Shown in pieces: positions 10,982 to 49,519 of a stretch of 64,000 nucleotides of DNA. The position numbers and the translations under genes are program-made. The stretch lies in contig NC_086106.1 in NCBI RefSeq assembly GCF_963921235.1, forward strand, positions 24,056,001 through 24,120,000. The letters run 5' to 3'. The number at the start of each line of letters is the position of its first letter. Within the stretch, counting starts at the first letter, position 1. This stretch comes from Mobula hypostoma (lineage: Eukaryota). Under the pieces are notes generated by a model. It did not search any database, was not told where the DNA came from, and worked only from the letters and a program-made list of their open reading frames with translations.

Positions 10982-13062
10982 CCTTGTTGAGCCAAAGTCT
11001 TACTACTCTGCGTCAGGCTATCCCGACCATGACCACTTCTAAAGGCCGTTATCTGTCCTTTATAGACACTTCGTTCTCCGTCGAAAATCTTTGGCGACAT
11101 GAGCGGGAAAATTCGTATTAGGTCAGTGGAGTACTCCAGTCATCGACTCCAAACTATTTGTCCGCTCTGTGCGGAACCACGTCTGTTGCATCTGCTCAAT
11201 ACTCCAATGGACTGCATGAATTGATCTTCGTCGCCGGCCGACGTTATATTTCCGATCTGCTGAAGGATGTTAGCTCCCACCAATGAGATGAAGGTTTTAC
11301 GGATGAGAATATTCTGATTCATGAGATCATTTTAAAGACGAAACACTCTCCATCGTATGAAACAATTTCTTCAGCTCCTGTGTCAATGCTGAGGGGCAAT
11401 GTTCGGATGTTGTTAGGTACGATTCCGATACGTTTATAGTTTATTGTTCAGCATTGTTCGGAACAAGCGGCAATCTAATGTTTCAGTTCTACTTTGCTTT
11501 TCCAAAATGGCATCGGTAGGGATAATGATATTTGATTTTCCATTCTGATCAGGCGTCGCTTTATCTCTAAACCGTGCATACCAAAGATCCCGTTACAGTT
11601 TGAATGAGCTTCGTTGCATTGCGTTGAAATCGTTTCTGTCGTTGTCGCTTCCTGACACTACATGGTATGAAAGGATGAAATCAGCATTTATTCCTCGATG
11701 GGCCTTTTGATCGTCGTTAGAATTATGAACTCATGAAACAGCCTGTAGAATTCTGATATGTCCGGCCTCCTTACTATATCAGCTCTCAGCGAAACGCCCT
11801 TCTCAAACCGAGTTTGATGAATGTGAGATTATTAAGGGTATTCATGTTGATTACGGTAATTTCTATCATTAACTTTTGTTCGAATGGGGTAGCGCAGACT
11901 CATTGGCAAATTCAGACGTCTAATCTACGACAATACAATGACAAATGCACATTGACACCACTAGAACTCAGAGAACAGAACAATTTACGTATTTCAAATA
12001 TCCGTGGTTCGATTGCAAATAATCGAAATAAAGTTTTCATAACTCAATCATATGCAACGTTACAGCCACGCTGAACTTAAGAGCTACCGATACCTCCAAC
12101 AGTGATCGAGTTGTGGCAGGAAAAGATACCGTTGGTGGGTTCTGACTTGTCTCTGCAAAGATGGAGTCACAAGGTGGTAGTCTCGATTCGAAGATATCGG
12201 TGAAATATGACGATTGGGTCTACTTGCTTGAAACAATTGGAAGTGAAATGTAAACACACGGAGGTATATCAGATAAAAAGGCGCCATGTAAATGTCGTAT
12301 GAAATACATTTGCAAAACTTGCACATCCTTGACGGATACAGCAGAGGGTGCAGTCTTAAGTTGTGTTGAAGTAAGTTTAAAGGCAAATGGCAACATAGCA
12401 GTTGTTTTTTTTTCATCTGCAAAGAATATGGTTAATATCTCTAAATGGCAGTCAGAGAGGGTGATATATAGTGGTGTAACTTCTGCAGTTAAGTTCATTA
12501 GTTTGGCAAAGGAAAGAACATAGCAAGATGGAGTTGGGAGAGAATGACATAAATAAGTTTGTCTGATCGTGAGGGGCTGAAGTTACCATTTCTTTGCCGT
12601 AGTTTGCTTGGAGTCTCTAAGTATTATGAAATGTTGCCAAGTTAATTTTTGTACATTGAAAACTTGAATCAAACTGAACCGACGTGGAATGAACTGGAAG
12701 TTTAGAACTTTCTCCGTGCAGCTTGTCTTTTCCACATAGTCTGCAATGGCTGGTTTCCCTCCTAAAGCTGGTACCAGACACATAGCTTTGGGCTTTACAA
12801 ACAGAAAGGAAATCCACTCCGTTATTTAGTTTGAGATTATACGAATTAATTTCTGATCATACCGTCTTTTCCGTTCAGTCTTATATACAGCCCAATCGTT
12901 AGCTCTGAGGAAGTAACTTATGTGTAGTCTCGGGAAATCTGCTAACTTTCATTTGATTGGTTGTGTTGACGAATAAAGAAACAGGAGAGGATTGGAAGAA
13001 ATCAGGAAAGGAGTTGATTGGTGGATTCGAGAATCAAGAAGAGTCATATTAAGTGTATGAGA

Positions 13063-13169
13063 CCAATGGCCTCTTAACAAAACGGAGGGCACTCCTGACG
13101 AACCACAGATTAAACTTATTTGAGAATACCCTTGTTTCATTGCAAATTCGTAGTGAACGGATCACAGAT
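13063..13169 (+). promoter_or_regulatory. Putative V-gene promoter
   Basis: CCAAT (13063), RUNX-type AACCACA (13101), octamer-like TTGCAAAT (13140); all retained in the paralog at 32777-32861. Confidence 0.5.
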
Positions 13170-13215
13170 ATGCGGGTCCTATATTTGTTTCTTATTGCAG
13201 CAGCGCTTCTGATTG
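13170..13215 (+). CDS. TRAV: TCR alpha/delta V segment 1, leader exon
   Basis: ATG..MRVLYLFLIAAALLI-G; 46 nt, phase-1 GTAAG donor. Confidence 0.93.
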
Positions 13216-13678
13216 GTAAGTTTCTCGACATTTTGAAAACCATCGTTCTCACCACGTTGAACAGGTTAGTTTATCACTGAATAGCTGTAAAGCAACATTG
13301 GTCATGGCAGCAAAGAATTTAGGAGTACGATAGTAACATGGATCCAAATCTCATGCAACTGGCAATAGAATGTTTGATGAGTATATCCGGGCCAAGCACG
13401 GCCGAATCGGACTCAGTCGTTGGCGGGGAAGATGTGTCTTTGTATTCCTCCTGAGATGCAATGAACTCCTTGATGGAGGTGATTGGAAGTTTTCACAAAA
13501 GATAATTGAATTCAGTCTTTCTTGCCACTTCTGCTAATTTTAGTTGAGCGTTTAACTCAAGTTGAAACCCCCCTCTGATTGGGCAGTACTAAGGAACCAG
13601 GGTTTGCTTCGGAGATATGCGAGCAGAATATTGATATTTCTTGATTGAAATTTTAAAATTCTTTTTGGTCTATAACAG

Positions 13679-13985
13679 GACATTGCCGAGGCGACGCTGT
13701 TTATCAGTCACCTGCTGTCACCACAGTCCGGGAAGGGAAAGTTGCAGAGTTAAACTGTAACTATACCACTACAAGAACAAGCAACCCTGGACTAATCTGG
13801 TACCGTCAGTATCCCGGAGGTTCTCTGGAGTTTCTTTTGGTCCGTTCGAAATACGACAAACAACTAGAGAAAATTCCCGGACAACGGTTCACGGCGCAGC
13901 TGGATGATTCGAGCAGAACGGTCCCACTCACAGTATCAGAAACACTTCTAGGAGACACTGCCATCTATTACTGTGCTCTGAGCCC
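13679..13985 (+). CDS. TRAV: TCR alpha/delta V segment 1, V exon (open)
   Basis: AG acceptor; HCRGDAVYQSP..LNCNY..LIWYRQYPGG..RFTAQLD..DTAIYYCALSP; C23, W41 and C104 present; no stops. Confidence 0.95.
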
Positions 13986-14024
13986 CACAGTTGTACAGAA
14001 CTATTCTGAACCTGTACAATAACT
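13986..14024 (+). other. 23-RSS of V segment 1
   Basis: Heptamer CACAGTT, 23-nt spacer, nonamer ACAATAACT. Confidence 0.93.
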
Positions 14025-14521
14025 AGTTTATTTCTCTAGTGGCTGCTTAGAGTAACTGCTTCTTTCTGAGCGTCTGTAGCTCCTAGGTCGATCAGTATAT
14101 GTCCAAATTTCAATATATTCCCTGAGTTAATTATCCAATAGATTGAGTCGCCTTGAGCCCCTTACTCTTCAATCTGTTCCAATGCACACGCAGCCAACAA
14201 AATCCAATCTCTAGTCTTTCACAAGACAAAGGAAACCACGGCCTTCCATTGTTTCATTTTTCGCTCACCATTTCGAAGAAGAGCTTCTTTCCCTTGCATT
14301 GGGGTGAATGCGGATGCTGGAGTGAAATGTTCTTTATTCTCCAATATGCTACTGTGTTAAAATCTCACATTTTCCGCAAGTTTTGCAGTTTTTAACATGA
14401 AATCTTATTGTTTTATTTGTTTTATTTCTAGTTTTTTCTCAAAGTTATAGCGCAGCGCCCTCGTATGGTTTACTAAGTAACTGCAATTTAACATTGCAAA
14501 CGATCACAAAGAACAAGTAGC

Positions 14522-14913
14522 ACCTCCCCCTCGTACCCCATCTGTTACTCATTTTTATGCACACATTCTTTCTCTCACTCTCCTTTTTCTCCCTCTGTCC
14601 CTCTGAATATACCTCTTGCCCATCCTCTGAGTTACCCCCACCCCCTTGTCTTTCTTCCCGGACCTCCTGTCCCATGATCCTCTCGTATCCCCTTTTGCCT
14701 ATCACCTGTCCAGCTCTTGGCTCTATCCCTCCCCCTCCTGTCTTCTCCTATCATTTTGGATCTCCCCGTTCCCCTCCAACTTTCAAATCCCTTACTCAGT
14801 CTTCCTTCAGTTAGTCCTGACGAAGGGTCTCGGCCTGAAACGTTGACTGCACCTCTTCCTATAGATGCTACTTGGCCTGCTGCATTCACCAGCAACTTTG
14901 ATGTATGTTGTTG
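14522..14913 (+). mobile_element. Penelope-like element 3' end / pLTR
   Basis: Pyrimidine-rich PLE 3' sequence with CTGACGA..GAAAC motif; flanked by direct repeat GAACAAGTAGC (14511-14521 / 14914-14924); absent from the paralogous site near 33985. Confidence 0.85.
14813..14848 (+). ncRNA. Minimal hammerhead ribozyme motif
   Basis: AGTC-CTGACGA-AGG(gtctcgg)CCT-GAA-AC-GT-T-GACT: stem I AGTC/GACT, stem II AGG/CCT, loopless palindromic stem III ACGT, GUU cleavage triplet. Confidence 0.75.
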
Positions 14914-16174
14914 GAACAAGTAGCTGCGTGTTCTTGTACAGGACGAAATTGAATTTTAATTTACCGCTAACCCTCACTGAGCTAATCGTGGAAGATGTAG
15001 GTTACAGTGCAAGATTTACTTTTTTTCTTTCCACAGAATTGTACACTTAACAATTTTCGATTCTGCTCAATTTCACTGTTGTACACTGTGAAAACACCAT
15101 GTCTATTTTACCTACCTGTGCTCTTGAAACAATTACATTTGTCTATAGAGCCCTCTCTGGCAGCATATCAGAGATATGAAACACACACTGAACTAAGAAA
15201 AAATAAGAGCTATACTTCCGTTCTCTTTGAAGTATTCATCTTATCAGCTTAAACATAAGAAACTTATGCCCCAATGTGTTCAATAATTAGCAAGTATGCG
15301 ATAATATAGTTGTAGGCTCCAAATATCGCTGATATTTTGAAATATGTTTTGTCACTTTACCCTAGTGTTCCTGCAGCTTCAAATAAAAACAGGCTTAACA
15401 CATCGATTGTGACCCGGCCGTAAGTTCTCCTGATGAAAAGAACATTGCAGGCAGTCCAATTTTGCGTAAAAAAAAAAGACGACGGGGACAAATTACCGGA
15501 AGCAAAATACAGACTCCTGTGCAATGCCTTATGATTCAATGTTCAAAAACCCTTAAACTCTAAGGAATATCATAAAACGTTCCCGATAGAACAATCTGCG
15601 TGATATATCACAGGTGGATGGTTATACAGTACTCACCTAGTCTTTCTGAACTTGCTTACGATCACGTCTAATCTCTGCAGCGAGTTGAAGATGCCAATAC
15701 TCAAATGTTCAATGCGATTGTGGTGTGTACACAATCACAAAACCGGAGAAATAAGTCCCAGCTTATGATTTAGTAAAACAAAAAAAAAAACAGGTTATGT
15801 TAGTTCATAAACGCCAACATGGACGTCTCGATCTGCAGCTCTCATTGAAAACAAACAAAAAAAAAACATTAGATATTCTCTTTTCAGCATGCTCACAACG
15901 ATGTTTTTCCAAATCTGTTTTTCTCTTTTTCTTTTCAGACCTTTCTCTACTTGACTGAACTGAGTACGTTTTTCTATATTTATTTATTATATCCTGCATT
16001 GTAAGGCGGTCGTAGGTTTTAATAAGTGTTACGAAAGATGACGGTGATATTGAAACGGATTTTAATTGTGATTTTACCTGGTCTATTGGACATACTTAAT
16101 TTCTGTACAAGTGATTAAAAAAACACAAGTTTAACACTAGAAAGAAATATGGGGATTATAAAAGATGTATGATC

Positions 16175-16700
16175 ACCATAAGACCAATAGGATATAGGAG
16201 CAGAGCTAGGCCATTTGGCATATCGTGTGCTCTCCGCCATTTCATTATGGCTGATGCAATTATCCCCTTAGCCCCAACTTACCTACCGGATTTCCCCCTG
16301 TCCGTTTATACATTGACCAATCAACAGTCTATAAAACTCTGTAGTAAATGTACGAATAAACGTGTTCCACAGCTGTCTATGACAAACAATTCCACAGGCT
16401 CACTATTCTTTGGCAAAAAAATAAAATAAAATCATGCTCCCTTCTAAAACATCACCCCTCTATACTGAGTCTGTCCCTGTGGTGTTAGACTCTTCCACCA
16501 TAGGAAACATCATCTCCGCAATCAGTCTTTCAATGGCTTTCACGGCTTGATATGTTCCAATGAATTCTAATGAATAGAGAAATAAGTAATCTGACGCTTC
16601 TGTTACGTCAAGTCATACAACCCTCGAATCATTTCCCTGAACCTGTTTTAAACCTTCTACAGTCTCAGCATACCCTCGCCTCTCTTTTACACTTGATGCA
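16175..16700 (-). mobile_element. CR1 LINE 3' fragment (paralog at ~38140-38660)
   Basis: Reverse-complement CR1 3' end; the + strand ORF at 16169 is its antisense. Confidence 0.75.
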
Positions 16701-16919
16701 TTTGAAGAATCTTTAGTTGTCCGCTTTAATATTTTAAGCTATCTTATATTAGTTTTCCGTTATTGAGTTTTAATCACATCTTGTAGCCTTCAGTATTTAT
16801 TTCCAAGCCTCTAAGTTTGCACTAATCTTTCATCTATTATATGCCCTCTCTTTGGATTTTATGTTGGTCTTGACATCTCCTGTTCGCCATAGTGGTGTCA
16901 TCTTTCCTTCGGAATACTT

Positions 16920-19100
16920 GTTCGTCTTTGTTATATATATTGATAGGGTGGAAACATAGCTTGACGTAGCAGCATTTCAGTGGAGTAATGGAAATTACAG
17001 TAGTATGAGAGAGGAGATTGTCAAAGTAAATTGGAAGAAGATGCTGGCAGGGACAAACAGTCGCGTGAATTTCTGAGTAAAATGAGGAAAGCACAGGATA
17101 GATGGATTCCAAAACCTAAGAATTACTCAAACGGCAAACAGTACAACAGCCGCTGGCAGGGGAGATCAAACAGAATGTCAAGGCAAATCAAAGGATATGC
17201 AAAAACACATATTTGCAGGAAGATAGAGGATAACGTTACTTTAAATCACTGTAGAGGGCGACTGAAAAGTCGGTAGAAGCGAAAGGGTGAAATATGAAAT
17301 CAAGCTAGCAAACAATATGAACGTGGATAGTAAAAGTTTGAAGCGATGTAAATCATAGAACAGTGGTGAGTGTGGATATAGGACCGCGAGGAAATGAGAC
17401 CAAGAAATTAATCACGGGACCAAGGAGCTGGCAGATAAACCAAATGAGCCTTTTGCAGCCGTTACCAATCTGGAATGCACCAGCAGATGCTCAAGGATGT
17501 AAGAAAGAGAAGTAAGCGCAGAACGTGGTCAAAAAGCTGAACGACATAACAGTAGTTAAGTCACCTGAGCCAGATTAACTGCACCCCAGTGTTCAAACGG
17601 AGGTAGCGGTAGAGATTGTGGAGGCATTTGTAATAATATTTCACAAAAAAAAAATATATTTTGACGCTGGCATGATGTCAGAGGGCTGAACGATTGCAAA
17701 CGTTACTCCACACGTTAAGAATAGAGGAGGGCAGCGGAAAGGAAATTATATTAATTTAGCCTGACTCGAGTGTTTGGGAAGATATTAATAATGATGAGGT
17801 GCTCTTGGAGACACAGTACACGATCGGAAAACACAACATGGTTTCCTGAAGGGAAAGTCTTGCCTGCGGAACCTGGTAGGATTCTGTGAGGGGTGTACAC
17901 GTACGATTGATTTACGGGATGCATTGGACGTTCCAGTTTTGTACCTCCAGAAGGCATCTGACAAGGTGACACACGTGAGGCTGCTTAGCAGGTGTAGATC
18001 CCATGATGTTACAGGAAAGTTAATGGCACGGTTAGAGGATTGGCTGATTGGTAGCAGGCAGCAAGTGGGAATACAATTATTCCTATCTGGTTGTCTGTCA
18101 GTGACTAGGGTCTCTTCGCTGGGGTCGAATATTGGGAACATCTCTTTTCATGCTGTATGTCATTGATGGAATAGATGGTTTTGTTGCCAAGTTTGAAGAT
18201 AGTTGAAGGGCAGGTAGTGTTGTGGAATCAGGTAGGATGCTGACAGACAGGAAAAAAAAAACACGAAAATATGCAAGGGAGTGGCAAATAAAATACAAAG
18301 TTGGAAAGAGCGAAATTAATGTACAAGCGTTTGCATTTTTGTCCTGGTGCAGAATTTTGTTTTTTTTTTTTTTTTTGTTAACGGAAAGAAAAGCCAAAAT
18401 AGGAAATGCTAATTGATTTAGGCATCCTTGCGCAGAAGAGCTTAATGGTTACCTTGCATGTGTAGTCACTTGTGAGGAAAGCAAATTCAATATTTGCATT
18501 CATGTCAAGATGTCTATTACACAAGAGCAGAGATGTGGTGATTGGGTTTTATAATACATTGGCGACTCTTCTCCTAGACTGTTGTGAACACTATTGGGAT
18601 CGTCATCTCAGAAGCGATGCGTTGGTATTTGAGAGGTTTCACAGCAGTTTCACAAAGACGAATCCGGGAATAAAAGGCTTATCATCCGGCGTAGTTTGTT
18701 AGGTCTGGATCTGTACTAGCAGGAACTTACAAGGCCGGGGGATATCATTGGTAAGTTTCAAATGTTGAAATGCCTAGAGAGTTTTGAGGAGGAAAATGAT
18801 GCTTGCCAGGTTGGGGAAGTCTAGGACAAGAGGGCACAGCGTCAGAGAGAGGGCTGTCAATATAAAACAGAGAGGTGAAAAATTTCTACAGAAGAGATGG
18901 ATGAATGTGTGGAATTTATTTACACAGTGAGCTGTCTATGCCAGGTTGTTGGTGGTATTTGAGCCACAGCTAGCTTCGAGCGTTCTTGATTAAACACGGC
19001 ACCAAAGGTTACGGGGAGAGAGTCGCAAATCGGGGAAGAAAAAAGGGGATCATCCATGATTGACCCAATAGCTAAATTATGCTCCTGTGTCTTATGGTCC
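16920..19100 (+). mobile_element. Degraded CR1 LINE ORF2 and 3' end
   Basis: GNYSSMRE, QHGFLKGKSCL and RT-region relics; CR1 3' tail at ~19080-19100. Confidence 0.85.
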
Positions 19101-19139
19101 AATCAGTTTTGATTACTGGTAGGACATCAATCCAGAACA

Positions 19140-20260
19140 GCTGATCCTCCAGAGGAATCAACCGCGTGCTTTTCTAAAAAAATCGATCGCGCCAGGACTA
19201 GAAATACCCACTTCTGTAATCCAGTACCACCTGATTTTCCCAATCATTCTGCATATTAAAGTCCTGCAACACTATTGTAACATTGCCCTCTTGGCATCCA
19301 TTTTCCAACACCCGTTGTAGTTTGCAGGAAACATGTTTACTGAATACGTAATGATTCTAACGATTTGATTTTATTTTTGACGTACACTGCAAAGCCGCCC
19401 ATTCTGCATTCCTGTCTATCGTTTCGATACAATGCTTATACTTTGGACATTAGGCAACCACCTATAATTTTTCAGCCACGTCCCCTGATGGCCACTGCGT
19501 CATGACTACCAATTTGTCACTGTACTGGAAGTTCACATTCCTTACTTCATGTTCTGCGCACATTTAAACACGGCACCTTCAGTCTTTTAGTCACCCTTTT
19601 CGATCGTGTCGCACTATTCTCATACTTATGATTCCCAGAGTACTCTGTTGTCTTATTAACATCTTCCCACACACACTCTCTCCGAACTATTCTGGCACTC
19701 TGTTTCATATCACCCTGGAACACTAATTGGAAATCCACCGTGCAGTAGTTACAGACCTCCCTGCCAGGGCACCTGTCCCCATCCAGTTCAGATGCAAACC
19801 GACCCTTCTGTACGGGCCCAAAGTCCTTGAAAAAGACGAATGATTCAAAAATATTACGCCCCCTCTCCTACACCATAACCTATCATATGTTACGGTGTAT
19901 TATCTTGATGGCTCTGCACTCAGTAGCATGCGGCACAGGTAGCAGTCCTGAGATGACTAAGCTGGGGGTCATGCTATTTAATTGAGCACATAAATCACCA
20001 AACTCCCTATGGTTAAACGCAACACTGGTCTTGCCAATGTCATTTGTACCTGCAGGGCTCATTGTTTCTGTTTTTCCATTTTATTATTTTAGAATGCTGA
20101 GGCCTTCATCGGAGAATATCCCAGGCCGTGGCACCAGCCAGGCAACATATCACCCGTCAATCTTGTTTTCGCCCACAAAATCCCCTGTTTGGAAATTTTA
20201 CTGACGAATCCTCTATTACCATAGCAACCCTCTACTTCTCTCAGCCCGCTTTTATAAGCA
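19140..20260 (-). mobile_element. Old CR1 LINE: ORF1 esterase and start of ORF2 endonuclease
   Basis: Minus strand LKVPCLNVR (LN-ARS motif relic) and MLPGWCH (C-LPGA esterase relic). Confidence 0.6.
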
Positions 20261-20671
20261 TTCTTAACGAAATGAAGGTGTATACCAGAATTGCAGCCGA
20301 ATGAGCTGAAAGAAAAAAAAATGTTGAGGAAGGAACCTTTGTTCATATTTCTGCCATTTTTGCCCATTTCGAAGAAATCCAAATCTTTCTAATACTTATA
20401 CCGTTTTGCTCCGACCGGAAGTTATTTCCAATTGATGGATTCCGGACACCTGCAGAACGAAAGGACTCACGGAGTTTGTTTCGAAGTTTCTGAAACAAGG
20501 TTTACGCGCATTTCAATTTACTGCTAATAGGAATGGCTCTCTGTGTGCAGGTATATGCCAGCTATAGCTGATCATGTAGTGGCCGAATGAATGACGTATT
20601 GTGCTAAGTGTCTTGCTCACATCTGTTTCGTAATCATATTTCTTGGTCAGTCAGACACTTTTGTAATCTAG

Positions 20672-21340
20672 CTGTTTTGTTTTGTAAACGATGCGTTTTG
20701 CAAAGCTGTGTCTGCAGATAAAAAATATACTGCTCCTTGCAAATTTCATCAAAAACGATTCTTGTGGCCTACTATTATCTGAGCAATGCATATTTATTCG
20801 AAGAACAGATTTGTTGGGAAGAACTCGGATTAACGTCAGTGAAACAAATTCGTTCCACCTGATTGTGGTGAACATCCAATGGTATGGTCTTCTGAAAGGT
20901 GTCGGATGAGGGAATCTCTTAGGTTCTTCCTGCAGTTCAGGAGGAGTCCAGGGCTGTCGAGTAATCATGACTGAAGCACCGTCTGTGGCGAGTATTCTCT
21001 CTAAATGACTTGGAACAGAAAGGATTTCTGTGAATTCATAGATGCGTTGGAAGCTATGGTACAAACAATAGCGTTGTGCATTGTAGCATGTTCAGGTCTG
21101 CCTATGTACGAAGCATACAGACACAGACCCTAACTCCACCATAATGACACACCATTTTGAGTGTCTTTCTTGGGTTTTCAGATTCTGTGTATTCTATCTT
21201 GCTTATCATTGGCATAATTTGGAATCCACTGGTGATGCAAAGTAATAGGATCAGTTGAGTTCGATGGTGACATGAAACTTAGCTGAAGCTTATACTTTCC
21301 ACGTACACAAGCCAGGAAATTATTACAGTTTATGGCAGTG
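20672..21340 (-). pseudogene. Candidate inverted, decayed V segment with 23-RSS
   Basis: Minus strand: FLACVR-G|GAAAGT (mutated donor, 21300); 272-bp intron; CACAG acceptor (21028); 317-nt exon with LNC, HW, R....D.SR and AVYF relics in mixed frames; CACAGCT-23-ACAAAACAG (20710-20672). Confidence 0.4.
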
Positions 21341-21419
21341 TGTGCTACAGTTTTGAGATATCTGAAAGTATAGCTAAATGCTCTACTCTGGTTTTCTAAG
21401 ACCGCATCCATAACTCAGC

Positions 21420-21655
21420 TGAGCGTAATTCGCAATCTACAATAGAATATTGGGTTTTCTCAAGACTAGGACAGGCCCAGTATATATGGATAAGCGAAGA
21501 CTCAGCCCCTTTACACTTATCACAAACGGGACTAATGTCAGGAGAAAACCGAGATAAATTAGTTTTAGACATATCAGCACTCTGTACAACATAAACTGCA
21601 AAAGGCAGTGGCGAGCACATAAAGAGGTTAAGTAAACTGACTTGAGAATTGAATC
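21420..21655 (-). mobile_element. L1 ORF2 C-terminal fragment
   Basis: LSRFSPDISPVCDKCKGAESSLIHIYWACPSL zinc-knuckle region. Confidence 0.8.
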
Positions 21656-23060: not shown

Positions 23061-23064
23061 TCTA

Positions 23065-24140: not shown

Positions 24141-24149
24141 AGAAAAATA

Positions 24150-32884: not shown

Positions 32885-32930
32885 ATGCGGGTCCAATATT
32901 TGTTTCTTTTTGCTGCAGCGCTTCTGATTG
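32885..32930 (+). CDS. TRAV: TCR alpha/delta V segment 2, leader exon
   Basis: MRVQYLFLFAAALLI-G; 46 nt; GTAAG donor. Confidence 0.93.
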
Positions 32931-33439: not shown

Positions 33440-33478
33440 CACAGGGGTACAGAACTAGTCTGAACCTGTACAATAACT
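33440..33478 (+). other. 23-RSS of V segment 2
   Basis: CACAGGG, 23-nt spacer, ACAATAACT. Confidence 0.92.
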
Positions 33479-38894: not shown

Positions 38895-39786
38895 ATATAT
38901 TGATAGGGTGGAAGCAAAGCTTCGACGCAGCAGCATTTCAGTGCAGTAATGGGAATTACAGTAGTATGAGAGAGGAGTTGGCCAAAGTAAGTAGGAAGAA
39001 GATGCTGGCAGGGAACAACAGTCGCGTGGGTATCTGGGTATTATGAGGAAGGTACAGGATAGATGGATTCCAAAAAAGAGGACTTACTCAAACGACAAAC
39101 AGTACAACAGTGGCTGGCAAGGGAGGTCAAAACTAATGTCTAAGCAAAACAAAGCGCATGAAACAAAACAAATATTTTCAGGAAGATAGAGGATAACGTC
39201 ACTTTAAATCACTATAGAGAGCAACTAAAAAGTCGGTAGAAGCGAAAGGGTGAAATATGAAATCAAACGAGCAAGCAATATGATAGTAATAGTTTGAAAC
39301 TATGTAAATCATAGAACAGTGGTGAGTGTGGAAATAGGATCGCTAGGAAATGAGACCTGGAAATTAATAACGGTACTAAGGAGCTGGCAGATAAACAAAA
39401 TGAGCGTTTTGCAGCCGTTACTACTCTGGAATGCACAAGCAGATGCTCAGTGATGTAAGAAAGAGAAGTAAGTGCAGTTACTCTTATAAGGAAGAAGGTG
39501 CTCAAAAGGCTGAACGACATAACAGTAGTTAAGTCACCTTAACCAGATGAAGTGCACCCTAGTGTTCTAATGGAAGTAACCGTAGAGATTGTGGAGTCAT
39601 TTTAATAATACTTCGGAAAAAAAAAATATTGGACGCTGGTTTATGTCAGAGTGCTTGAAAATTGCAAATGTCATTCCCCACGTTAAGAAAGGAGCAGGGC
39701 CGTGGAAAGGAAGTTATATTAATTTAGTTTGACCTAGTGGTTGGGAAGATATTAATAATGATGAGGAGCCCTTGTAGACACAGTCT
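38895..39786 (+). mobile_element. CR1 ORF2 fragment, duplicated copy of 16920-17817
   Basis: Colinear with copy 1 until an abrupt junction at 39786. Confidence 0.8.
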
Positions 39787-41429
39787 AATATCTAACTATC
39801 TAATAATATTTCTATACCAATCGTTAAATGTGGAATTCCGCACAGAAAGTAGGAAAAGGTGATTGTGTAAATTAAGACTAGAGAGATAAAATCCATGAAG
39901 ACCATTAAATTTGCTGAACTGAGCCCATATTCTCAGAGTATCTCTAATAAGAGGATTAACAATCAGTCTAGACAAATGAAAAGGAAGTGCGGAACTGAGA
40001 GGTGCAGAAATGGAAAGATCCTTAGTCAAGTTCAACTCCATTGTTACCCATTTTGGGTAGCCAGACTGATTTTGGAAGAAAGACCAAAATAAGATAACTA
40101 ATATTGTATGTCCAGTGAAATAAACGAAAATTAGGGAAGGACATACCTGGAGAGAAATTCTGGAGAGACGTTTTTGTTTCAAACTTCTCTCATATTCTTA
40201 ATTGCCATTTAACACCTAACCCCCCTGTTGCTCTTTTTGACACCTTGTGTGAAGTAGATACGCACTTGAGTCCGACTAAAAGTCGAAGATTATCTTTTGC
40301 CTCACTCTTGGCTAGACGGATAGTTCTTCTTAGGTGGAAAGATGCTGCCCGACCCACTCACGCTTAATGGCTTAGTGATATTCTGACCTGTTTAACCTTG
40401 AAAAGATTCATTATTCACTTTTTAATTGGAACATAATGTTTCCTGAGGTGTGGTGACCTTTCTTGAATATTTTCATAACTGCTCGATAGGTGAAGTTTAT
40501 CCTTTTATTTTGTATGCTTCATTCCCTTACTTTCAGCTTCTTTTGTGTATTTTTTTTTCTTGTTTTTGTTGTGAATTGCATTGTAGTTTTGGTAGTCGGC
40601 ATTATACTTTTTCTTTATCATATATACATGTACAGTTCTGCGGGGTTGAATGCTCGCATTGTTTTTGCTTCTTTTTTTTTTGCTTTTGCGCACAGAAATG
40701 GTTGACCTGTTTTTTTTTCAGTGGGATGTTGAGGTGGATACTAATCTCAGATGATGCTATTTTGGGTGCTTTTTAAATGTATTATGAATTTGATATTGTT
40801 TGTTTTGCACTGTATCAACTTCCGTTTTGTTGATGATTGTCTTTATTCTGTAGCTCTATTGTAGAAATGTATAAACATATTTTTAAGAATGCTTTCCCGA
40901 AATACTACTACATATTTAAAGCCCTCCCTGTTTTTATCTCTAAATCCTTTGTTTGACGTTTAGATTCAATTATATCTTCTTACTTATGGAAGAATAAAAC
41001 ACCTCGATTAAACAAGGTTCATCGTCAGAAAGCTAAAAAAAAAAGGGGAATGCCCCAATCCTATTTTAGGTTTCCTGCTGAGCAGTCAAGATTTGCTACC
41101 TTACGTATCCTATATACTACATTAATCATGAACACTGTCCGGTTTGGGATTTTTCAGAAGTTAATTCTGTTAATAAATTTTCTATTATTTCTTTTCTTGG
41201 TTGTTCAATTATTTTATACTTAAATAATTTAACTGATAATTTTGTCTTTAAACATTCTTCGAGTATTTGGTTACAATTTAGAAAATTCTTTAGCTTATTT
41301 GTTTTTTCACTCACCAGTCCCATTTTTCTGAGTGTCTTTGTTAAAGCTTCTTTGACTGAGGTAGTTTATAAAGAGTAGAATAGGCTAGGTATTAAATGTT
41401 TTCAGGATCTGTTTGTGCAGGTGTATTTC

Positions 41430-44400
41430 TGTCATGTTTACGTTTGGCTATTCCTCTTTAACGTTCCTTTCTCCCTGATTATGCCCTAATTTCAACCATT
41501 AGATGCTAGTTTACTTAATTACAGTACACCTGGTTTGCATCAGAAATTGTGAAATTAGTACGATGGCGTCACTACACAGGTTGCCAGTTTGATGGTCTAT
41601 TCTTGTGTGATACTTCGTTCTCTCGTCCGCTTAGAACCGTTAGTTCTAAGTTTAGTTCCAAGTTCTACTCTAGTTTCAAGACAGTCCCTGTAGCTGCTGT
41701 CACCTTGTCAAGATCCCTCCTGTTTGCTGTTCTACGTTCACGTCTACGCCATCATTCCCAACTCAGGCGACGTGCCGGTGTCCTGCACATGGGTTCTCCT
41801 CAGTCGCCACGTGCAATAGCACAAGCTGGCCAACATGAACAGAGAATCTTCTGGAACAAGCACTCGCCAGCCAGGGTTTCCTATTGGCCTTCCACGATCG
41901 GCTGCTCCAGGGAGCCATGGAAACCCTCCGGTCCCTGTCAGTTGATGTAAGAAAGGTCAGTGAACAGGTCGACAGAGTATCCAGACATATTACAACGTCG
42001 ACTCCGAGAATTCCGTCTACCAGCCCAGACAGCCTGTGGTGGCAACTCCCAAGGCGTCAACAACACGTCCACTAAGAGACCCGCAGCCAGAGACTCTTCC
42101 TTCCCCACCTTCATCTCAGGAATAAGGAAGATTGTTGACCATCCCTTCCGCGGTAAAAATGTCGCTAAACGTCTACTCACCCTCTATCAAGGCTCACGTA
42201 GTGTTGCAGAATACTCCGTGGAGTTCCGGACATTAGCGACCGACTGGGGCTGGAATGATGAGGCACTCCAATAGGTATTTAGGCAAAGCCTCTGAGACAA
42301 GGTAAGGGACGAGTTGGCGGCTAGGGATGACACTAACCACCTGGATGTATTGACTCCCTAGCCACCAGGCTAGACAACCGACTCCGAGAACATCAGAGGG
42401 AGAGAACCGGTCGCCATACTCCTTTGGCCACCCCACGGCACGCTTTACCATGTACCACCAGTCCCAACCTCTCTCCTCCTCCAGCTCCTAGAATAGCATC
42501 CGTCCCGGCCGTTTCCACCACGATGGGGGAGGAACCAATGCAGCTGGGACGGAGCCGTCTTTCTCCCTCAGAGCGACTCCGGAGATTAAGAGCAGGGGAT
42601 GTTTCTATTACGGCAACTCTGGCCATTTCCGAGCTACCTGTTCCCAACGCCCAAAGGGGAGGGCTCACCAGTAGAAATGGGAACCCTGGTGAATCCGACT
42701 ACATTCTCTTGTGTCCCCCACTGCCGTTTGCAGATGCAATCTACCATATGCTACAACCGACAGAGCCTGTCGTTGTCTGCCCTGATAGACTCCGGTTTGA
42801 AGGGAATTTGTTGGATGAAAACATAGCTTCTCAGGTCTGAATTCCTCGGGAGCCGTTGACTGACCCTCTGGAAGTCCGGTCACTGGACGGAAGACTTCTG
42901 GCCCGAGTTACTCACTGTGCCCCACCACTGTCCTTGGTTCTGTCTGGGAACTATCCGAGAGCAGGTGCAATTTAACTTAATTTACACTCCTCAAGCTACT
43001 AGAGTTCTTGGGTACCCCTGGTTAAGCCGCCATAATCCTTACAGTGATTCGTCCACCTGGAAGATATCCAGCTGGAGTCAGTTCTGTCACGCCACTTGTC
43101 TACAGTCGGCCCTTTCCCCTGAAAAAACCACCACGACCTCACTAGCTGTTTAAACCCCTGACTTTTCCAGGGTTCCAGCAGAGTACCACAACCTGTGACA
43201 AGTGCTTAGTAAACAACGCGCTCTTTCCTTGCCTCCACATCGACCATACGATTGTGCTATCGACCTTCTCCCCGGAGATCCTCTACCCACCAGTCGGCCA
43301 TATAACTTGTTCCGGCAAGTGAGGGAAGCAATGAAGGGTTACGTCAGTGAATCTCTCGCGGCGGGCATCATCCGACCGTCATCCTCCCCGGTGAGGGCAG
43401 GGTACTTCTGTGTGGAGAAGAAGGATGGTTCACTACGTCCCTGCATCGACTGCCGAGGCCTAAATCATATAACCATAAAGAACAAGTACCCACTGTCTCT
43501 GATAAATTCTGCGTTCGAACCACTTCACGGAGCCACCATCTTCTCGAAGTTGGAACTACGAAGCGCCTACCATCTGGTCCGAATAAGGGAGAGGGACGAG
43601 TGGAAGACGACATTAAATACCCCTTTTAGGCTACTTCGAGTACTTGGTCCCGCCTTTTGGCCTCGCCAATGCCCCCGTTGTTTTTTTCAAGACTACATTA
43701 ACGATGTGCTAGGGCACTTTATTAACCGTTTTGTGTTTGTCTGTCGGGATGTCAGCTTAATCATTTTCAGCAATGCCAAGCAACAAGTTCATCATGTCCG
43801 CCAAGACCTGCAGAGGCTGCGGGAGAATAAATTATTCGTAATCCCGGAGAGGTGCGTATTCCACGTCCCCTCGGTCAGCTTCCTAGGTTATATCATCGAG
43901 AGCGGACAGGTGAGAGCTGATCCCGAGAAGAACGGGCTCTGACGGAGTGGCGCAAACACACGGTCCGCATGCAACTCCAACGGTTCCTGGGGTTTGCGAA
44001 CTTCTATCGCCGGTTCATCAGAAACTACAGTCAGGTGCCGGTTCCCCTGACCCGACTTACCTCCCCCGCCACACCTTTCCTTTGGAACTCCAAAGCGAAA
44101 TCAACATTCGCGGAACTAAAGAGACGCTTCACGTCTGCTCCCGTTTGATTCAACCGGAGCCGTCCTGTCAATTCAGTGTGGAAGTTGAATACTCCCTCTC
44201 CGGGGTGGGAGCGGTACTGTCCCAACGTTCGGGCCCGGGTCAGAAACTACATCGCTGTGCCTTCTTCTCTGGCTGACTGTCTCCGGATGAACAAAATTAC
44301 TACGTGGGGAACCGAAGCTAGTGGCGGTCAAACTGGTGTTGGAAGAATGGATAAACTGGTTGGAGTGGGCGGAACACCCGTTCATCGCCTGGACATACCA

Positions 44401-46417
44401 TAAGAACCTTGAATCTATCCAGACCGCCAAACGCCTGAATTCTCGGAAGGCCCGTTGGGCATTATGTTTTGACCGGTTCAGGTTTACCCTCACCTATCGT
44501 CCCGGGTACAAGAAAGGGAAGCCCGATGTACTCTCCCGTCAATACGTTTCCCAACCCCGACACCATCCTTCCATCAGCCTGTGTAGTGACTGCTCTCACC
44601 TGGGAGATCGAGTCTAGCGTCAAAGACGCCCAAAGGATTCAACCTGACCCAGGCATTGGACCTCCCAATCGCTTATTTGTACCGGATACTGTTCGATCGC
44701 TGGCTCTCCAGTGGAGGCACACTTCTCGTTTTTCCTGCCACCCCGCAATCAATCGGATTCTGACTATTCTGAAGAGACATTTCTGTTGGCCCACCATTGA
44801 CGTGGACACCCGTTTCTATGTGTCTGCATGTTCCGTCTGCGCCCGTCGGAAAGCCTCCCTTCGGCCACCTGCGAGATTGCGTCGTCCCCTGCCTGTCCCT
44901 GGTCGTCCCTGGTCACACATCGCTGTGGATTTCCTGATAGTTCTACCCTTTCACGTGGAAGCACTGCCGTCCTAACTGTGGTGGACCTTTTCTCCAACTC
45001 GGTGCATTTTGTAGCCCTCCCTAAACTCCCTTCCGTGCAGGAGACCGCAGACCTTCTCGTCACCCACGTTTTAAGACGTCACGGATTTCCTTCGGATATT
45101 GTCTCTGACCCGGGTCCTCAATTCATTTCGCAAGTCTGGAGATCCTTTTGTCGAGCCCTTTGTCCCTCAGTTAGCCTATCATCCGGTTTTCACCCATGGA
45201 CGAACGGACAAACGGAGCGGGTCAACCAAGAGTTTGGATGCGGCGTTACGTTGCATAACGGCCAACAACCTGTCTAGATGGAGCAAACATCTCGCATGGG
45301 TAGAATACGCCGACAACTCTCAGGTTCAACACAGAGATCGGAAAGTCTCTTTTTGAATGCTCTCTTGGTTATCAGCCCCCATGTTTCCCGTCCAGGAAGA
45401 AGGGATTGCGTTGCCGGCAGTCCAGGCCCATATACACAGGCGCCAAAAAAACCCGGGAAGATACACGCACGGCTCTGCCTCGCTCAACCAACCGTAACCG
45501 AAAATGTGCCGACCGACATCGTATCCCTGTTCCTGAGTATCGACCTGGGCAGATGGTGTGACTCTCGTATAGACACATTCCTCAGAAAAAAAACAGCCCA
45601 AGAAGCTTGCTCCCCGCTTCCTGGGATCTTTCAAGGTTGAGAACATTATCAACCCTGGGACAATCCTGCTCAAGCTACCTACGGCTTTGCGGATCCATCC
45701 TACATTTCACGTCTGCCAGTTAAAACCGGTTTCTGTCAGTCCCTCCTGCCCTGCGACCGAACCCCCTCCACCCACCTCTCTGCCCCTCTCCCCCGGATCA
45801 CCGACGACCACCCGGCTTACACTGTGCGGCGGTTATTGGATGTCTGCCGTCGGGGCAGGGGCCTCCAGTACCTGGTCAACTGAGAGGGGTACGGCCCGGA
45901 GTAACGTTCCTGGTTTCCCGCTCCTACATTCTCGACCCTTCTCTCATCCGAGATTTCCATCGGGACATGCCAGACAAGCCTGGGGGATCGCCATAGGCTC
46001 CCGTTGAGGGAGGGTAACTATCATGGTTCCGTTTGGTTGTTCCCCTTTAAACCTCCTTTATCCCTGATTATGCCATAATATCAGCCTTTAGATTTCCAGT
46101 TGCTGAGAGTTTACTTAGTTACAGTTCACGTGGTTTGCATCGCGACTGTGCAATAAGTACGCTGTCGTCACTATACAGGTTGCCAGTTTGTTGGTATATT
46201 CCTGTGTGATACTTCATTTTCTCGTCCGCCTAGGACCGTTAGTTTTAAGTTTAGTTCCAAGTTCTGCTCTAGTTTCAAGATAGTCCCCGTAGATACTGTC
46301 TCCTTTTCAAGATTCCTCCGGTTTGCTATTCTACGTTCACGTCTACTCAAGCATCCCCAACTCAGTCGATGTGTCGGTCTTCTGCACTTGGCTTCTCCTC
46401 AGCCGCCCCGTGTAACA
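41430..46417 (+). mobile_element. Full-length, degraded sushi-like chromovirus (Gypsy with chromodomain)
   Basis: LTRs 41430-41818 and 46019-46417; TSD ATTTC/CTTTC; PPT GAGGGAGGG; RT ([11 protein letters not shown]), RNase H, IN, and chromodomain [23 protein letters not shown]. Confidence 0.92.
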
Positions 46418-47525
46418 CTTTCCTGATTTGATCAAAGATCTATTTAATATAATCTTCGTAAATCTCACTTTTTTAGATCATTACAAATTAGAGACTTGCG
46501 TTCTCAACTTTATACATTTTCTAAATGCCCAGATAAGAATTTAATTGATATAATTTTTGCTTTGAAACCATTTCATAATGGTTCTATATCTAATATTTAT
46601 AGTACGTTGTTGGCATTGAGAAACATTCCGTTAGATAAAATTCAAAACCTCTGGGAACATGACCTACAGATTGTAATTTATGAGGATACTTGGAATGAAA
46701 TATTTAAACTTGTTCACACCTCTTTGTTATGTGCGTGTCACTCTCTGTTACAATTTAAAGTGGCCCATAGAGCCTATATGACTACAGATAAGCTCTCTCA
46801 TTTTTATTCAGAATTTTCTCCACGCGGAAATAGGTGTAGCGTCGAAGAGGCCTCTATAATTCATACGTTTTGGTCCTGCCAGCGGCTTGATAACTTTTGG
46901 AAAAAAGTATATCAAACTTTCTCAGAGCTTTCCAACGTAAACTTTAAACCCATCCTCTCACTGCCTTGTTTGGCTTAGTTGGAGGAAATTATTTTACTCT
47001 TAAGTCGAATGATTTGAATATTTTATCTTTTATTTCTCTTTCAGCCAGAAGAGTTTTGTTCCTTAAATGGAAAGATGCCGCTCCACCTACTCATCTTCAT
47101 TGGTTGATTGCTGTTATGCCATGTTTAAATCTAGAGAAGATGGGTTCTATTTCTATACCGAGACAAGTTTTTGTTTTTCACATTGTGGGGACCTTTCTGG
47201 AACTACTTTCGTTATTTTCGATTTCCTCAGCAATGATGATGGATATTATATGTTTGAATTTACGACTATATGTCTTTTTTTTTGTTTCTTTTCTTATAAC
47301 CAAGCAGCTTTTCTATTTTTTTCTGCTTTTTTCTCTCTTTTTTTCTATTTTGTTATGGAATTTTGTTTTTGCTTTAGAATAGATTAGATTATATCTTTTC
47401 AAAATGACGGTTAATTTATAATACATTGTTATGGGGAAATTTAATATAGTTTTTGTTTCGGTAATACCATAATGTATTTTCTATTCGGCTATTCAAATAA
47501 TTAATAAATATATTGGGATAAAAAA
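46418..47525 (+). mobile_element. L1 ORF2 C-terminus and 3' UTR
   Basis: HSLLQFKVAHRAY..RCS..SIIHTFWSC; AATAAA and A-tail at ~47505-47525. Confidence 0.82.
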
Positions 47526-49519
47526 ATGCGATATTCCCCAGTAGTCAAGCGCAATTCCCCTTCATTGACTGACCTAGGAGGTATCAATACATAAAATCCG
47601 GGATTGCAGGAGAGGCGGAATAAGATGTGTGTACAGAAAGGAGAGATAGCGATAGCGGGAACGAAACAATGTAGCACAAATGCCAGAAAGACCCAGTAAG
47701 TTTGACAAACGCATTAATGAATAAATACGTCCTGGAAAAAGTAACACTTCGGAATTTGGCCATAGACAGTCCAGTCCACGGCAGCGGAAGGAGTAGTGTA
47801 AGGCACGAGGCCAGAAGCGTCATTCCATTAAAAAAAATAAAACAGATAAGCTGAAATTCAACAAAAGCAACAAGTAGATCAGGGATACCAAGAGAATGGC
47901 TGCGCTGAAGGAGTAATTCAGGTTAGAGGATCCTGCCATGCTGCTGCCTATGCCCCGAAACGTAATGAGTTTAAGTAAATTAAAAGGTTAATTACGTACA
48001 ATATTTTAGATCCAATAAGTTGACTGTTTTTTTTTTAAATCTTACCCCAGATGCCGCGTTCCCTTTCTGATTTTATATCATTTTCACAATACATTAATTC
48101 TTCGCTCACCTGACTTTTCTTTCCCGAAAAATCAATTTGCGTAAATACCGAGAAAACATTACATCTTCCTCCCTTAACGACTCGAAAGTATTCCTTTTAA
48201 AGATCTTTTTTGAAAAAAAAAATGATAGTTATATTTGACAAGGCTCAGCATGGATCTTCGTGCTTGCCTGTTCACTTAGGAGTCACGGATTTGCTGTTGT
48301 CCATTCAACGTGTCATCAATGAATATCGTCCTGTCAAGAACGCAGAAACTGTATCAGTTTCTGCAGATGTTTATCAGACGGTTCTCCAATTCAAGAGCAT
48401 GAAATGCAAAAAATGCGTGTTCCAAATTTTAGATGCAGGAATAAAAGGAGGAGAGGTGAGTTTTGTTTAATCCATCCGGTAACTACCCATGCTCTACACA
48501 TTACAGAAAAAAATATGCCATCGATTTTCTCACCATTTCAATGTTATTCACCAAACGCATGGCAATTTTCAACAATACGTGTACTCATGGTTGAGATTTC
48601 TCCAAGGTATGGTTGTTTACTTCCCATTGACCAAATTCTGCTGTTTCAGATTTCTTCCCTCATCATTCTCAGCCACATTCTCTATTTTATTGCATCGTTG
48701 CCTCTGGTAAAGTTCCTTCACTCATTTGAAAGCCTGCACTATAGCGCATCTTTCAGGGTTTTAATTTACCTCTCAAGATATAAGCTATATAATTATGAAT
48801 GCAGGATGAGTGTGTGTTTGCGATCAACAGATCAGCTAGAATAAAGAAGACAATGACAAATAGCACCACAGAGAAACGGGAATGTGTTGGGAACGAGACA
48901 GAAACACACACATGTTTCCATGTGAGAACATCACGATGCATGCGAACAGATGGATGGTGGAACCGTTGCAGTATAGCACCATCAAATGATTCGGCTCTTT
49001 TTTTTTTCAGATCGGAGTGTCAACTGTGACTGCTGAACCGGTATACTGCATTGGGATGTTTGCGAATGACAATTCTGGGATGCCACTATTTCTTGATCAT
49101 TAGTTGAAAAATAACTTCGATCGTGCGTTGATCTCAACTTGGATTTTTGATTTGATGTTGCAGATAACACCCATGGAGATTCTAATGACTTTTGCTTCTC
49201 CCCCAGTTCAGATCAGAATTGCAGTTCCACGTTAAATTACCGTGATTGCATTGAGTTTATAGAGATATTCTTATTTCATAGACCGCCATTTGTCACTTCT
49301 TAACACCATTATATAGTCGAGGCGCAATAGATATTTGTGCATCGACCGTTCATTTGGTTGCAGTTTGGAGAACGAAAACAACAAGCATTGTGTGGAACAT
49401 GCTATACTACTCCTTCACATTATATAATTTCTCAGTCAGCGTATTTTTTTTCTTTTATTTTGTCATCCTGACAGCTGCCGAGACTGATGAAACGAGAGGA
49501 CAGAGAGCATTAAAGCTGA

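Follow-up and report, generated by a model that had tools for sequence, protein, structure and literature searches.

The window, which is the whole 64-kb stretch of ray DNA that was analysed, contains part of a TCR V array in which one unit is present as two tandem copies, A and B. The source species is called organism A here, and organism B denotes a second species label. Self-BLAST of the window aligned the two copies in seven colinear blocks on the same strand, comprising 8,705 aligned columns with E values from 0 to 1e-93 and ungapped identities of 84-92%.

11924..31644, +: copy A of the duplicated unit, present length 19,721 bp (colinear with copy B in blocks; left boundary alignment)
31646..49101, +: copy B of the duplicated unit, present length 17,456 bp (colinear with copy A in blocks; boundary alignments)
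11924-13336/31646-33051, same strand: block 1, A/B (self-BLAST, as for blocks 2 to 7)
13576-14497/33030-33958, same strand: block 2
14917-15045/33988-34111, same strand: block 3
15054-17817/37022-39784, same strand: block 4
23055-25375/39789-42085, same strand: block 5
25571-26520/42094-43041, same strand: block 6
31318-31644/48781-49101, same strand: block 7
31318..31644, +: unique terminal block of the unit in copy A, with its B counterpart at 48781-49101 (BLAST; single-copy read depth)

A sequence-only reading of this DNA had claimed that the sequence from 31646 onward matches that from 11924 onward, and that 31322-31644 matches 48785-49101; both matches were recovered within the seven blocks. 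Besides the V gene with its promoter side and RSS, the blocks take in unique low-depth sequence, and they align as colinear segments rather than as independent TE copies. When one tract (15325-16400) was left out, the K2P distance between A and B was 0.149 and uniform at ~0.15. No third copy of the unit was found within the 64 kb, flanks included, when the window was compared with itself.

V genes and their probable transcription

Each copy carries one V gene, designated V_A and V_B.

13170..13215, +: V_A leader exon (ATG, 46 nt, GT donor at 13216; phase 1, in-frame join to the V exon)
13679..13985, +: V_A V exon, open (307 nt; Cys, Trp and YYC present; Pfam V-set E=7.9e-14)
13986..14024, +: V_A 23-RSS (CACAGTT, 23-nt spacer, ACAATAACT; RSS scan)
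32885..32930, +: V_B leader exon (46 nt; RNA-like contig spliced into the V exon)
33133..33439, +: V_B V exon, open (307 nt; Pfam V-set E=2.8e-13; X5 contig 33156-33380, 0 differences)
33440..33478, +: V_B 23-RSS (CACAGGG, 23-nt spacer, ACAATAACT; RSS scan)

A leader, an intron, an open V-set exon and a 23-RSS were read in both genes; one open V gene with a 23-RSS had been claimed for each copy. The leader introns are of phase 1 with GT..AG borders, measuring 463 nt in V_A and 202 nt in V_B, and the V-set exons of both genes retain the conserved Cys, Trp and YYC. In each gene the RSS directly follows the V exon, with one mismatch in the heptamer and two in the nonamer. V_A and V_B are 87% identical with a dN/dS of 0.66, and their divergence lies mainly in CDR1 and CDR2, where the replacements are clustered. 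A homologous-protein search with the V_A exon gave a single match, 63% identical, and the matches from the protein atlas and the PDB sequence search were generic V-set/TCR and antibody V domains, by which the chain type is not separable.

The RNA nature of runs X5 and X18 is a guess, for which an intron-less joint argues. V_B appears to be transcribed and spliced: X5 yielded an exact contig over 33156-33380 of its exon (0 differences) together with an RNA-like contig over 32762-32931 that runs straight into the start of the V exon. V_A is probably transcribed and spliced too, given that 0.15 of its sampled 31-mers were present in X5, almost all of them private to V_A within the window. V_A-private 31-mers were also observed in an organism-B RNA-like run, and a few V_A words were present in organism C. 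A productive V-J join (CAHTASTGLLFG) was found in a D-less transcript from a close family member that is not assignable to V_A or V_B. The putative alpha/delta assignment of the chain draws in part on this D-less transcript. X5 contig 15 was considered as rearranged V_A and rejected, as two G>C changes expected of V_A were missing from the X5 change summary.

Junction and breakpoints

31645, +: junction base G, unit end (GATCATT) to unit start (TCTACGAC) (boundary alignment; contigs of organisms A and B)

The claimed junction, GATCATT-G-TCTACGAC at 31644/31645/31646, was reproduced by boundary alignments. Because the bases at 11923 and 49102 are both A, base 31645 is either an inserted base or a mutated A, and either may hold; the position of the junction is thus known with an uncertainty of 1 base, and the microhomology amounts to 0-1 bp. 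No alignment was obtained between the 100 nt preceding 11924 and the 100 nt preceding 31646, and the sequences following 49101 and 31644 were unrelated to each other. These unrelated outer flanks indicate that the event was not repeat-mediated, and the earlier claim that no repeat sits at the junction agrees with the boundary alignments, in which the three boundary points share none. The junction itself is located in sequence of single-copy read depth. The proposal of a non-homologous or replicative event is thus supported by breakpoints without a repeat and by the joining of unit end to unit start. Neither the RSS scan nor the boundary alignments showed an RSS-like site, in the form of a CAC-heptamer/nonamer pair, at breakpoints 11924, 31645 and 49101.

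Sequences spanning 31645, which the sequence-only reading had named as a check, exist in both species. The organism A contig covers 31218-31772 across the junction with 0 differences, and runs X1-X4 are probably from the assembled individual, so that independent support comes from organism B only. There, a gap-free contig covers 31464-31772 at 93.5% identity (20 differences in 309 nt), and in a second contig the match begins exactly at 31646, as the left boundary of copy A would give. Since an organism B contig crosses the junction, the duplication is older than the split between organisms A and B.

One further contig from organism A, contig 2 of run X1, has 31646 as its exact starting point and shows the letters of copy A at 31677 and 31791. 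Its differences from copy B number 13, against 19 for copy A of the window, so it was rejected as that copy, and there must be either a third paralogue or a divergent allele.

Transposable elements and remodelling of the copies

41429..46418, +: complete sushi-like Ty3/gypsy LTR element, copy B (Pfam, LTR alignment)
41429-41830 and 46018-46418, +: LTRs of this copy-B element (LTR alignment)
43199-46004, +: RT, RNase H, integrase and SH3 of this copy-B element (Pfam RVT_1, RT_RNaseH_2, Integrase_H2C2, rve, SH3_Tf2-1)
24730..26520, +: sushi-like element of copy A, reduced to its 5' LTR and gag side and broken off at 26520 (aligned to B 41429-43041)
26521..31317, +: A-only second gypsy-like element, 3'-truncated, in place of the rest of the sushi-like element (Pfam; read depth)
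27616-28179, 30299-30637 and 30838-31293, +: gag/PNMA, RNase H and integrase zinc domains of the A-only gypsy-like element (Pfam)
17818..23042, no strand assigned: composite TE insertion of 5.2 kb found only in A, carrying LINE RT fragments in both orientations (no counterpart in B at 39784-39789; tblastn)
34112..37021, no strand assigned: B-only 2.9-kb insertion (absent from A at 15045-15054; no Pfam match)
14498..14916, +: A-only 0.42-kb insertion with an 11-bp direct repeat (GAACAAGTAGC) on both sides (A/B comparison)
13337..13575, +: A-only insertion of ~240 bp in the V_A leader intron (A/B comparison)

The two copies had been claimed to share the same nested CR1, inverted-L1 and sushi elements. 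The sushi-like part of this claim stood: according to Pfam and the alignment, the element is common to both copies and sits in the same place. The distance between the 5' LTRs of A and B was 0.11, against 0.17 between the two LTRs of B and 0.21 between the 5' LTR of A and the 3' LTR of B; as both distances to the 3' LTR exceed that between the 5' LTRs, the insertion preceded the duplication. The CR1 and L1 part did not stand. Pfam recognised nothing in 20 ORF pieces of the shared blocks, among them two terminal-block pieces at 11757-12071 and 12223-12582, and no reverse-transcriptase domain appeared in these blocks. A set of 28 pieces drawn from the shared blocks and from the private inserts of 5.2 kb (A) and 2.9 kb (B) was likewise without Pfam matches, so that the CR1/L1 labels were not confirmed. 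Similarly, in tblastn with the LINE ORFs of the window all matches fell in private insertions (A 17882-18148 and 21456-21914; B 46448-46975). This search worked at the ORF and protein level with no repeat library, and short non-coding LINE tails are beyond its reach.

Both copies are reshaped by private TE insertions plus a deletion. The A-only gypsy-like element shows very high read depth until ~31300 and has ~35% amino-acid identity to the copy-B pol. Regions A 26400-31400 and B 42900-48900 were considered as diverged copies of one element; this was rejected, as sensitive nucleotide and tblastx comparisons gave only distant pol similarity (~35% aa). Rfam at gathering thresholds gave 0 matches in the whole window, and hence no hammerhead family in the A-only 14498-14916 insertion; a CTCF core motif scan also gave 0 matches. 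The tandem duplication itself was upheld, but the cassette size of ~18-20 kb proposed for it was not: the present 19.7 kb (A) and 17.5 kb (B) are swollen by private insertions, and the ancestral unit would have measured ~9-15 kb, with the ancestral content from 26520/43041 to 31318/48781 not reconstructable from two copies.

A low-divergence tract behind the V genes

15325..16400, B ~37293-38368, no strand assigned: low-divergence tract, 1.07 kb (97.6% identity vs 86.5% elsewhere)

The tract lies 1.3-2.4 kb behind the RSS of each V gene. It contains 26 substitutions in 1,073 columns, compared with 13.5% elsewhere (binomial P=4e-37), and its K2P is 0.025. Its longest ORF had no usable protein-atlas match. 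On the strength of the alignment, gene conversion is the likely cause. A more tentative idea, which we consider unlikely, is that the tract is no chance conversion; it might be a V-associated non-coding element kept near-identical by selection, or one case of a recurrent ~1.2 kb conversion that homogenises V-flanking DNA across the ray TCR locus.

Discussion

The reading we favour, with a probability of about 0.88, is one tandem duplication of a TCR V-array segment that contained one V gene together with a sushi-like element inserted earlier, followed by a non-homologous join and by the retention of both V genes intact. In this reading, a segment of ~9-15 kb would have been duplicated once in tandem with its one V gene aboard, and the unit end would have been joined to the unit start non-homologously, with 0-1 bp of microhomology. 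The join could have arisen by template switching during replication, or from breaks on sister chromatids or homologues that were repaired by end-joining. Leader, splice sites, V-set frame and 23-RSS were all retained in both daughter V genes. The probable order of events begins with insertion of the sushi-like element (LTR K2P 0.17-0.21), followed by the duplication (K2P 0.149) and the split of organisms A and B (about 0.07). Private TE insertions, the loss of the 3' sushi-like part from copy A and homogenisation of the 1.07-kb tract (K2P 0.025) would have come last. Judged by divergence, the duplication is old and not a recent birth, with a K2P of ~0.15 being roughly twice the divergence from organism B.

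The reads hint at further paralogues elsewhere, so the pair may represent one of several steps in a longer series. If the amplification was a larger, multi-step one, the unit, or copy A together with its left flank, would occur again outside the window, and the V gene would not have been born by a single event alone. The X1 contig that starts at 31646 with copy-A letters, yet has 13 differences rather than 19, is consistent with this, as are at least six distinct organism A contigs at >=90% identity on the V exon. However, only two copies exist within the 64 kb, with no third in the flanks, and the extra V-exon contigs may come from family members with unrelated flanks. We therefore consider this wider series possible but unlikely.

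Unequal crossing-over between two repeat copies (NAHR) is very improbable. The region is TE-rich, but NAHR would leave a repeat at the outer ends and at the junction, whereas the three boundary points share none and the junction falls within sequence of single-copy depth. Even less can be said for RAG cutting at cryptic recombination signals as the source of the breakpoints. The locus is a RAG target in lymphocytes, and an RSS-like site, CACAGAG-24-ACAGAAACA, is located at 48867; however, this site is 234 bp off the breakpoint, 11924, 31645 and 49101 have no heptamer/nonamer pair, and RAG activity in the germline would be needed as well. That two haplotypes or a collapsed region were set side by side in assembly, a general risk in repeat-rich immune loci with nothing further in its favour, is hardly credible, since haplotypes are expected to be near-identical while these copies are ~15% different with at least five private insertions, and the junction is also present in contigs of organism B. 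Equally negligible is the idea that the same TEs inserted independently in both places and thereby produced the similar segments: the blocks are partly TE-derived (sushi-like LTR and gag region), but their order and orientation are preserved over all seven, they include the V gene, promoter side, RSS and unique low-depth sequence, and their divergence is uniform at ~0.15 except in one tract.

Tandem duplication of V cassettes, the process favoured here, is a textbook one, long known from human VH and opossum TRB. Throughout the human IGH V region there are repeated V-bearing units of 4-24 kb, and a 48-kb region was read as a tandemly duplicated 24-kb unit, with events dated by spacer divergence (Matsuda et al. 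1998, PMC2212390). The ray pair resembles that region in its V-bearing tandem units and in its divergence-based dating. In contrast to this mammalian antibody heavy-chain locus, it belongs to a TCR V array and has one V per unit, and its junction is read to the base and present in a second species. In opossum TRB, a 12.8-kb D-J-C cassette is tandemly duplicated, V segments evolve by duplication and deletion, and V subgroups are set at >=80% nucleotide identity (Parra et al. 2008, PMC2275272). Growth of a TCR locus by cassette-sized tandem duplication is common to both animals, and V_A and V_B, at 87%, would fall into one subgroup under the opossum criterion. However, the opossum cassettes are near-identical and recent, whereas the ray pair is old (K2P 0.15) and heavily TE-remodelled.

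The sequence-only reading had further described the locus as a directly readable case of birth-and-death expansion. Birth-and-death evolution of antigen-receptor V genes is a model reportedly due to Nei, Ota and colleagues. As in that model, the copies diverged after duplication with replacements concentrated in the CDRs. The birth by duplication was borne out, as an old rather than a recent one; the death half was not, as neither copy is dead.

The accepted picture of V-array evolution is unchanged by the ray pair. The pair provides a clean, datable example of the growth of a cartilaginous-fish TCR V array, in which an LTR element serves as an internal clock. Annotation of the TCR locus in this ray can make use of it, as can estimates of how fast V genes turn over, TEs enter and gene conversion acts in the antigen-receptor loci of elasmobranchs.

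Two colinear copies of a V-gene cassette

Self-comparison of the window revealed seven colinear, same-strand blocks that are common to two adjacent intervals, copy A (11924-31644) and copy B (31646-49101).

Blocks shared by copies A and B (self-comparison, all same strand)
Block 1: A 11924-13336, B 31646-33051
Block 2: A 13576-14497, B 33030-33958
Block 3: A 14917-15045, B 33988-34111
Block 4: A 15054-17817, B 37022-39784
Block 5: A 23055-25375, B 39789-42085
Block 6: A 25571-26520, B 42094-43041
Block 7: A 31318-31644, B 48781-49101

Global re-alignment of the copies gave 8,705 aligned columns with 84-92% identity per block, and the matching coordinates proposed in the sequence-only reading were reproduced with offsets of at most 4 bases. 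The K2P divergence between the copies outside 15325-16400 was 0.149 (7,632 columns). Colinearity extends over unique sequence, which excludes the possibility that the blocks are independent copies of transposable elements. The proposed unit size of 18-20 kb fits the present-day copies, not the original event: the sequence common to A and B amounts to 8.7 kb, and private insertions have lengthened both copies. The ancestral unit would be about 14.5 kb if B 43041-48781 is ancestral.

Only two V-type exons were found in the 64 kb, one in each copy, and the T-cell-receptor V genes to which they belong are called V_A and V_B.

V genes of copies A and B
V_A leader exon: 13170-13215
V_A leader intron: 463 nt
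V_A V exon: 13679-13985
V_A recombination signal sequence (RSS): CACAGTT, 23-nt spacer, ACAATAACT
V_B leader exon: 32885-32930
V_B leader intron: 202 nt
V_B V exon: 33133-33439
V_B RSS: CACAGGG, 23-nt spacer, ACAATAACT

Both genes show the usual phase-1 arrangement, in which the leader gives one codon base and the V exon the other two. The exons are open, contain the conserved Cys, Trp and YYC, and matched Pfam V-set (V_A, E=8e-14; V_B, E=3e-13), so that one open V gene with a 23-RSS is indeed present in each copy. Identity between the two exons is 87% at the DNA level and 77% at the protein level (dS 0.20, dN 0.13, dN/dS 0.66), with replacements mostly in the CDR1 and CDR2 stretches. An isolated RSS-like site at 55360-55388 (CACAGCG, 13-nt spacer, ACAACAACC) has no recognised V, D or J frame beside it and is probably due to chance.

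Junction and breakpoints

Boundary alignments at three points showed that homology between the copies begins at TCTACGAC (11924, 31646), and boundary alignments placed its end after GATCATT (31644, 49101). The 100 nt to the left of 11924 did not align with the 100 nt to the left of 31646, nor did the sequence to the right of 49101 align with that to the right of 31644. Thus, the junction reads GATCATT-G-TCTACGAC, as had been claimed, and the breakpoints are free of repeats. Because bases 11923 and 49102 are both A, the G at 31645 may be either a mutated base from one of the two sides or a single inserted base. Microhomology at the junction was 0-1 bp.

Since the flanks are unrelated at the boundary points, repeat-mediated unequal crossing-over is excluded. 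Involvement of RAG in the breakpoints has no support, as recombination-signal-like sites were searched for at the breakpoints and none was found. The copies would have been joined via end-joining or a replicative template switch, and the microhomology of 0-1 bp fits neither exclusively. The repeat-free breakpoints support the non-homologous or replicative event of the sequence-only reading, the two mechanisms being inseparable at such a junction.

Detection of the junction in sequencing reads

Read runs of organism A (the source species label) and organism B (a second species label), and a small, RNA-like run, X5 (its RNA status is a guess), were retrieved with 31000-33600 and compared on 30900-34300 at 90% likeness. 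Contigs of both organisms crossed 31645. The organism A contig, covering 31218-31772 without differences, bridges the junction by 427 + 127 nt; this sample is probably the assembled one and hence non-independent. A 309-nt organism B contig, which was present in both runs of the sample, aligned without gaps over 31464-31772 with 20 differences (93.5% identity), indicating that the same junction is present in the second species label. Read depth reached the thousands as far as about 31300, within a high-copy retroelement, and was at single-copy level across 31356-31700, which places the junction in unique DNA. The possibility of an assembly artefact is excluded, since the copies are 15% diverged, carry private insertions and are joined at the same junction in organism B.

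The match of a second organism B contig starts exactly at 31646, with about 570 unmatched letters beyond, as would be expected at the left boundary of a copy A. Organism B contigs differed from the window by 5-9% (about 7%). As this is about half of the A-B paralogue distance, the age of the duplication is roughly double that of the split between the two organisms. A joint in organism B contigs, whose shorter side is only 28 nt, skips 199 nt at 32707-32907, a stretch that starts shortly before the V_B leader region and extends into it; this may be a paralogue or orthologue deletion, or a mis-join.

An organism A contig (run X1, contig 2) matching 31646-31821 begins exactly at the first base of the unit and carries the copy A base at both 31677 and 31791. 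Against copy B it shows 13 differences, where copy A of the window shows 19, which implies that a third paralogue, or a divergent copy-A allele, exists outside the window. The A/B pair may, on this ground, be one step of a longer duplication series.

Transcription of the V genes

One X5 contig matched 32762-32931 without differences and then ran on into ACATTGCCGAGGC, with which the V_B exon begins, indicating that the leader intron was removed. Another matched 33156-33380 of the V_B exon exactly, including letters 33269-33270, which are absent from every DNA contig there. These contigs show that V_B is transcribed and spliced in the RNA-like run. A third X5 contig covers 33343-33432 with 7 differences, followed by ATACAGCCAGCACGGGGTTACTCTTTGGAA, and reads in frame as C-A-H-T-A-S-T-G-L-L-F-G; it is a productive V-J join. 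The number of differences between V_A and V_B in this stretch is likewise 7. Assignment of the transcript to V_A was dropped because the X5 change summary lacks two G>C changes needed for V_A; thus, it is assigned only to a close family member. The TCR locus context and this D-less V-J transcript make an alpha/delta-type V likely, a chain type that sequence searches alone leave unsettled.

Only 4 of the 921 31-mers of V_A occur elsewhere in the window. The fraction of sampled V_A words found was 0.15 in X5 and 0.15 in an RNA-like run of organism B, which suggests, short of proof, transcription of V_A or of a near-identical gene.

Transposable elements and private insertions

Self-comparison and LTR alignment identified the repeat triplet 24730-25112, 41429-41816 and 46018-46415 as LTRs of a sushi-like Ty3/gypsy element.

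Elements and private insertions
B, 5' LTR from 41429, 3' LTR end near 46418: complete sushi-like Ty3/gypsy element
A only, 26521-31317: gypsy-like element with gag/PNMA, RNase H and integrase zinc domain, ending within integrase near 31300
A only, 13337-13575: about 240 bp, inside the V_A leader intron, splice sites intact
A only, 14498-14916: 0.42 kb, flanked by an 11-bp target duplication / direct repeat (GAACAAGTAGC)
A only, 17818-23042: 5.2 kb, LINE RT pieces on both strands
A only, 25376-25570: about 190 bp
B only, 34112-37021: 2.9 kb

The sushi-like element of copy B encodes, in order, RT, RNase H, integrase zinc, integrase core and SH3 domains. Copy A retains the 5' LTR with the gag-side part within aligned blocks and departs into other DNA at 26520, partway through the motif encoding YPWLSRHNP. 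The A-only gypsy-like element is about 35% identical to the copy B sushi-like pol. The simplest account would be that another element inserted into the copy A sushi-like element, with a subsequent deletion to 31318. The A-only family is very high-copy in organisms A and B (word depth in the thousands), and pieces of it occur in X5.

LTR distances (K2P) were 0.11 for A5'-B5', 0.17 for B5'-B3' and 0.21 for A5'-B3'. Because each 5' LTR is closer to the other than to the 3' LTR, insertion of the sushi-like element predates the duplication. The sushi-like element is thus shared as proposed, whereas the shared CR1 and inverted L1 were not recovered, no LINE reverse-transcriptase remnant being found within the A/B-shared blocks. 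Beyond the sushi-like region, private insertions explain the length difference. Rfam at gathering thresholds identified no hammerhead and no other family in the whole window, insertion 14498-14916 included.

Further repeats lie outside the copies. Segments 51350-54778 and 58470-61897, 7.1 kb apart and 94.7% identical over 3.4 kb, carry a minus-strand LINE-type reverse transcriptase (RVT_1) and no V gene; they represent two separate insertions from a single LINE family, or else a younger tandem duplication. Upstream of copy A, a direct repeat of about 0.87 kb (3580-4428 and 10110-10981; 80% identical, 6.5 kb apart) encloses a LINE-type RT ORF (9254-9799), and a minisatellite occupies 1341-1997 (27-bp unit, higher-order period of 134 bp, about 19 copies, 76% match).

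A low-divergence tract and relation to known systems

The tract 15325-16400 of copy A is 97.6% identical to about 37293-38368 of copy B, compared to 86.5% elsewhere between the copies. It is 1.07 kb long, is located 1.3-2.4 kb downstream of the V-gene RSS in both copies, and is bordered on both sides by shoulders of intermediate divergence. Its K2P distance is 0.025 (26 substitutions in 1,073 columns; binomial P=4e-37), and it had no Pfam, Rfam, atlas or CTCF-motif match. Non-allelic gene conversion is most likely its cause; at 0.025, the tract distance is smaller than that between the species (about 0.07), so the conversion would be later than the split of organisms A and B. Selection on a non-coding element that keeps the tract alike is the alternative. 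This tract is the sole part of the case that might hold something more.

The original observation is confirmed, and its interpretation as a tandem V-cassette duplication in a TCR V array is supported, with corrections to the unit size and the shared elements. The human VH locus consists mostly of homology units of 4-24 kb, and a 48-kb region of it has been interpreted as a tandem duplication of a 24-kb unit whose spacer divergence was used for dating (PMC2212390). In opossum TRB, a 12.8-kb cassette was duplicated, and V segments are described as evolving via duplication and deletion (PMC2275272). The event in the ray TCR V array is of the same kind as these duplications. The ray pair is a well-resolved new example of a mechanism that is already known.
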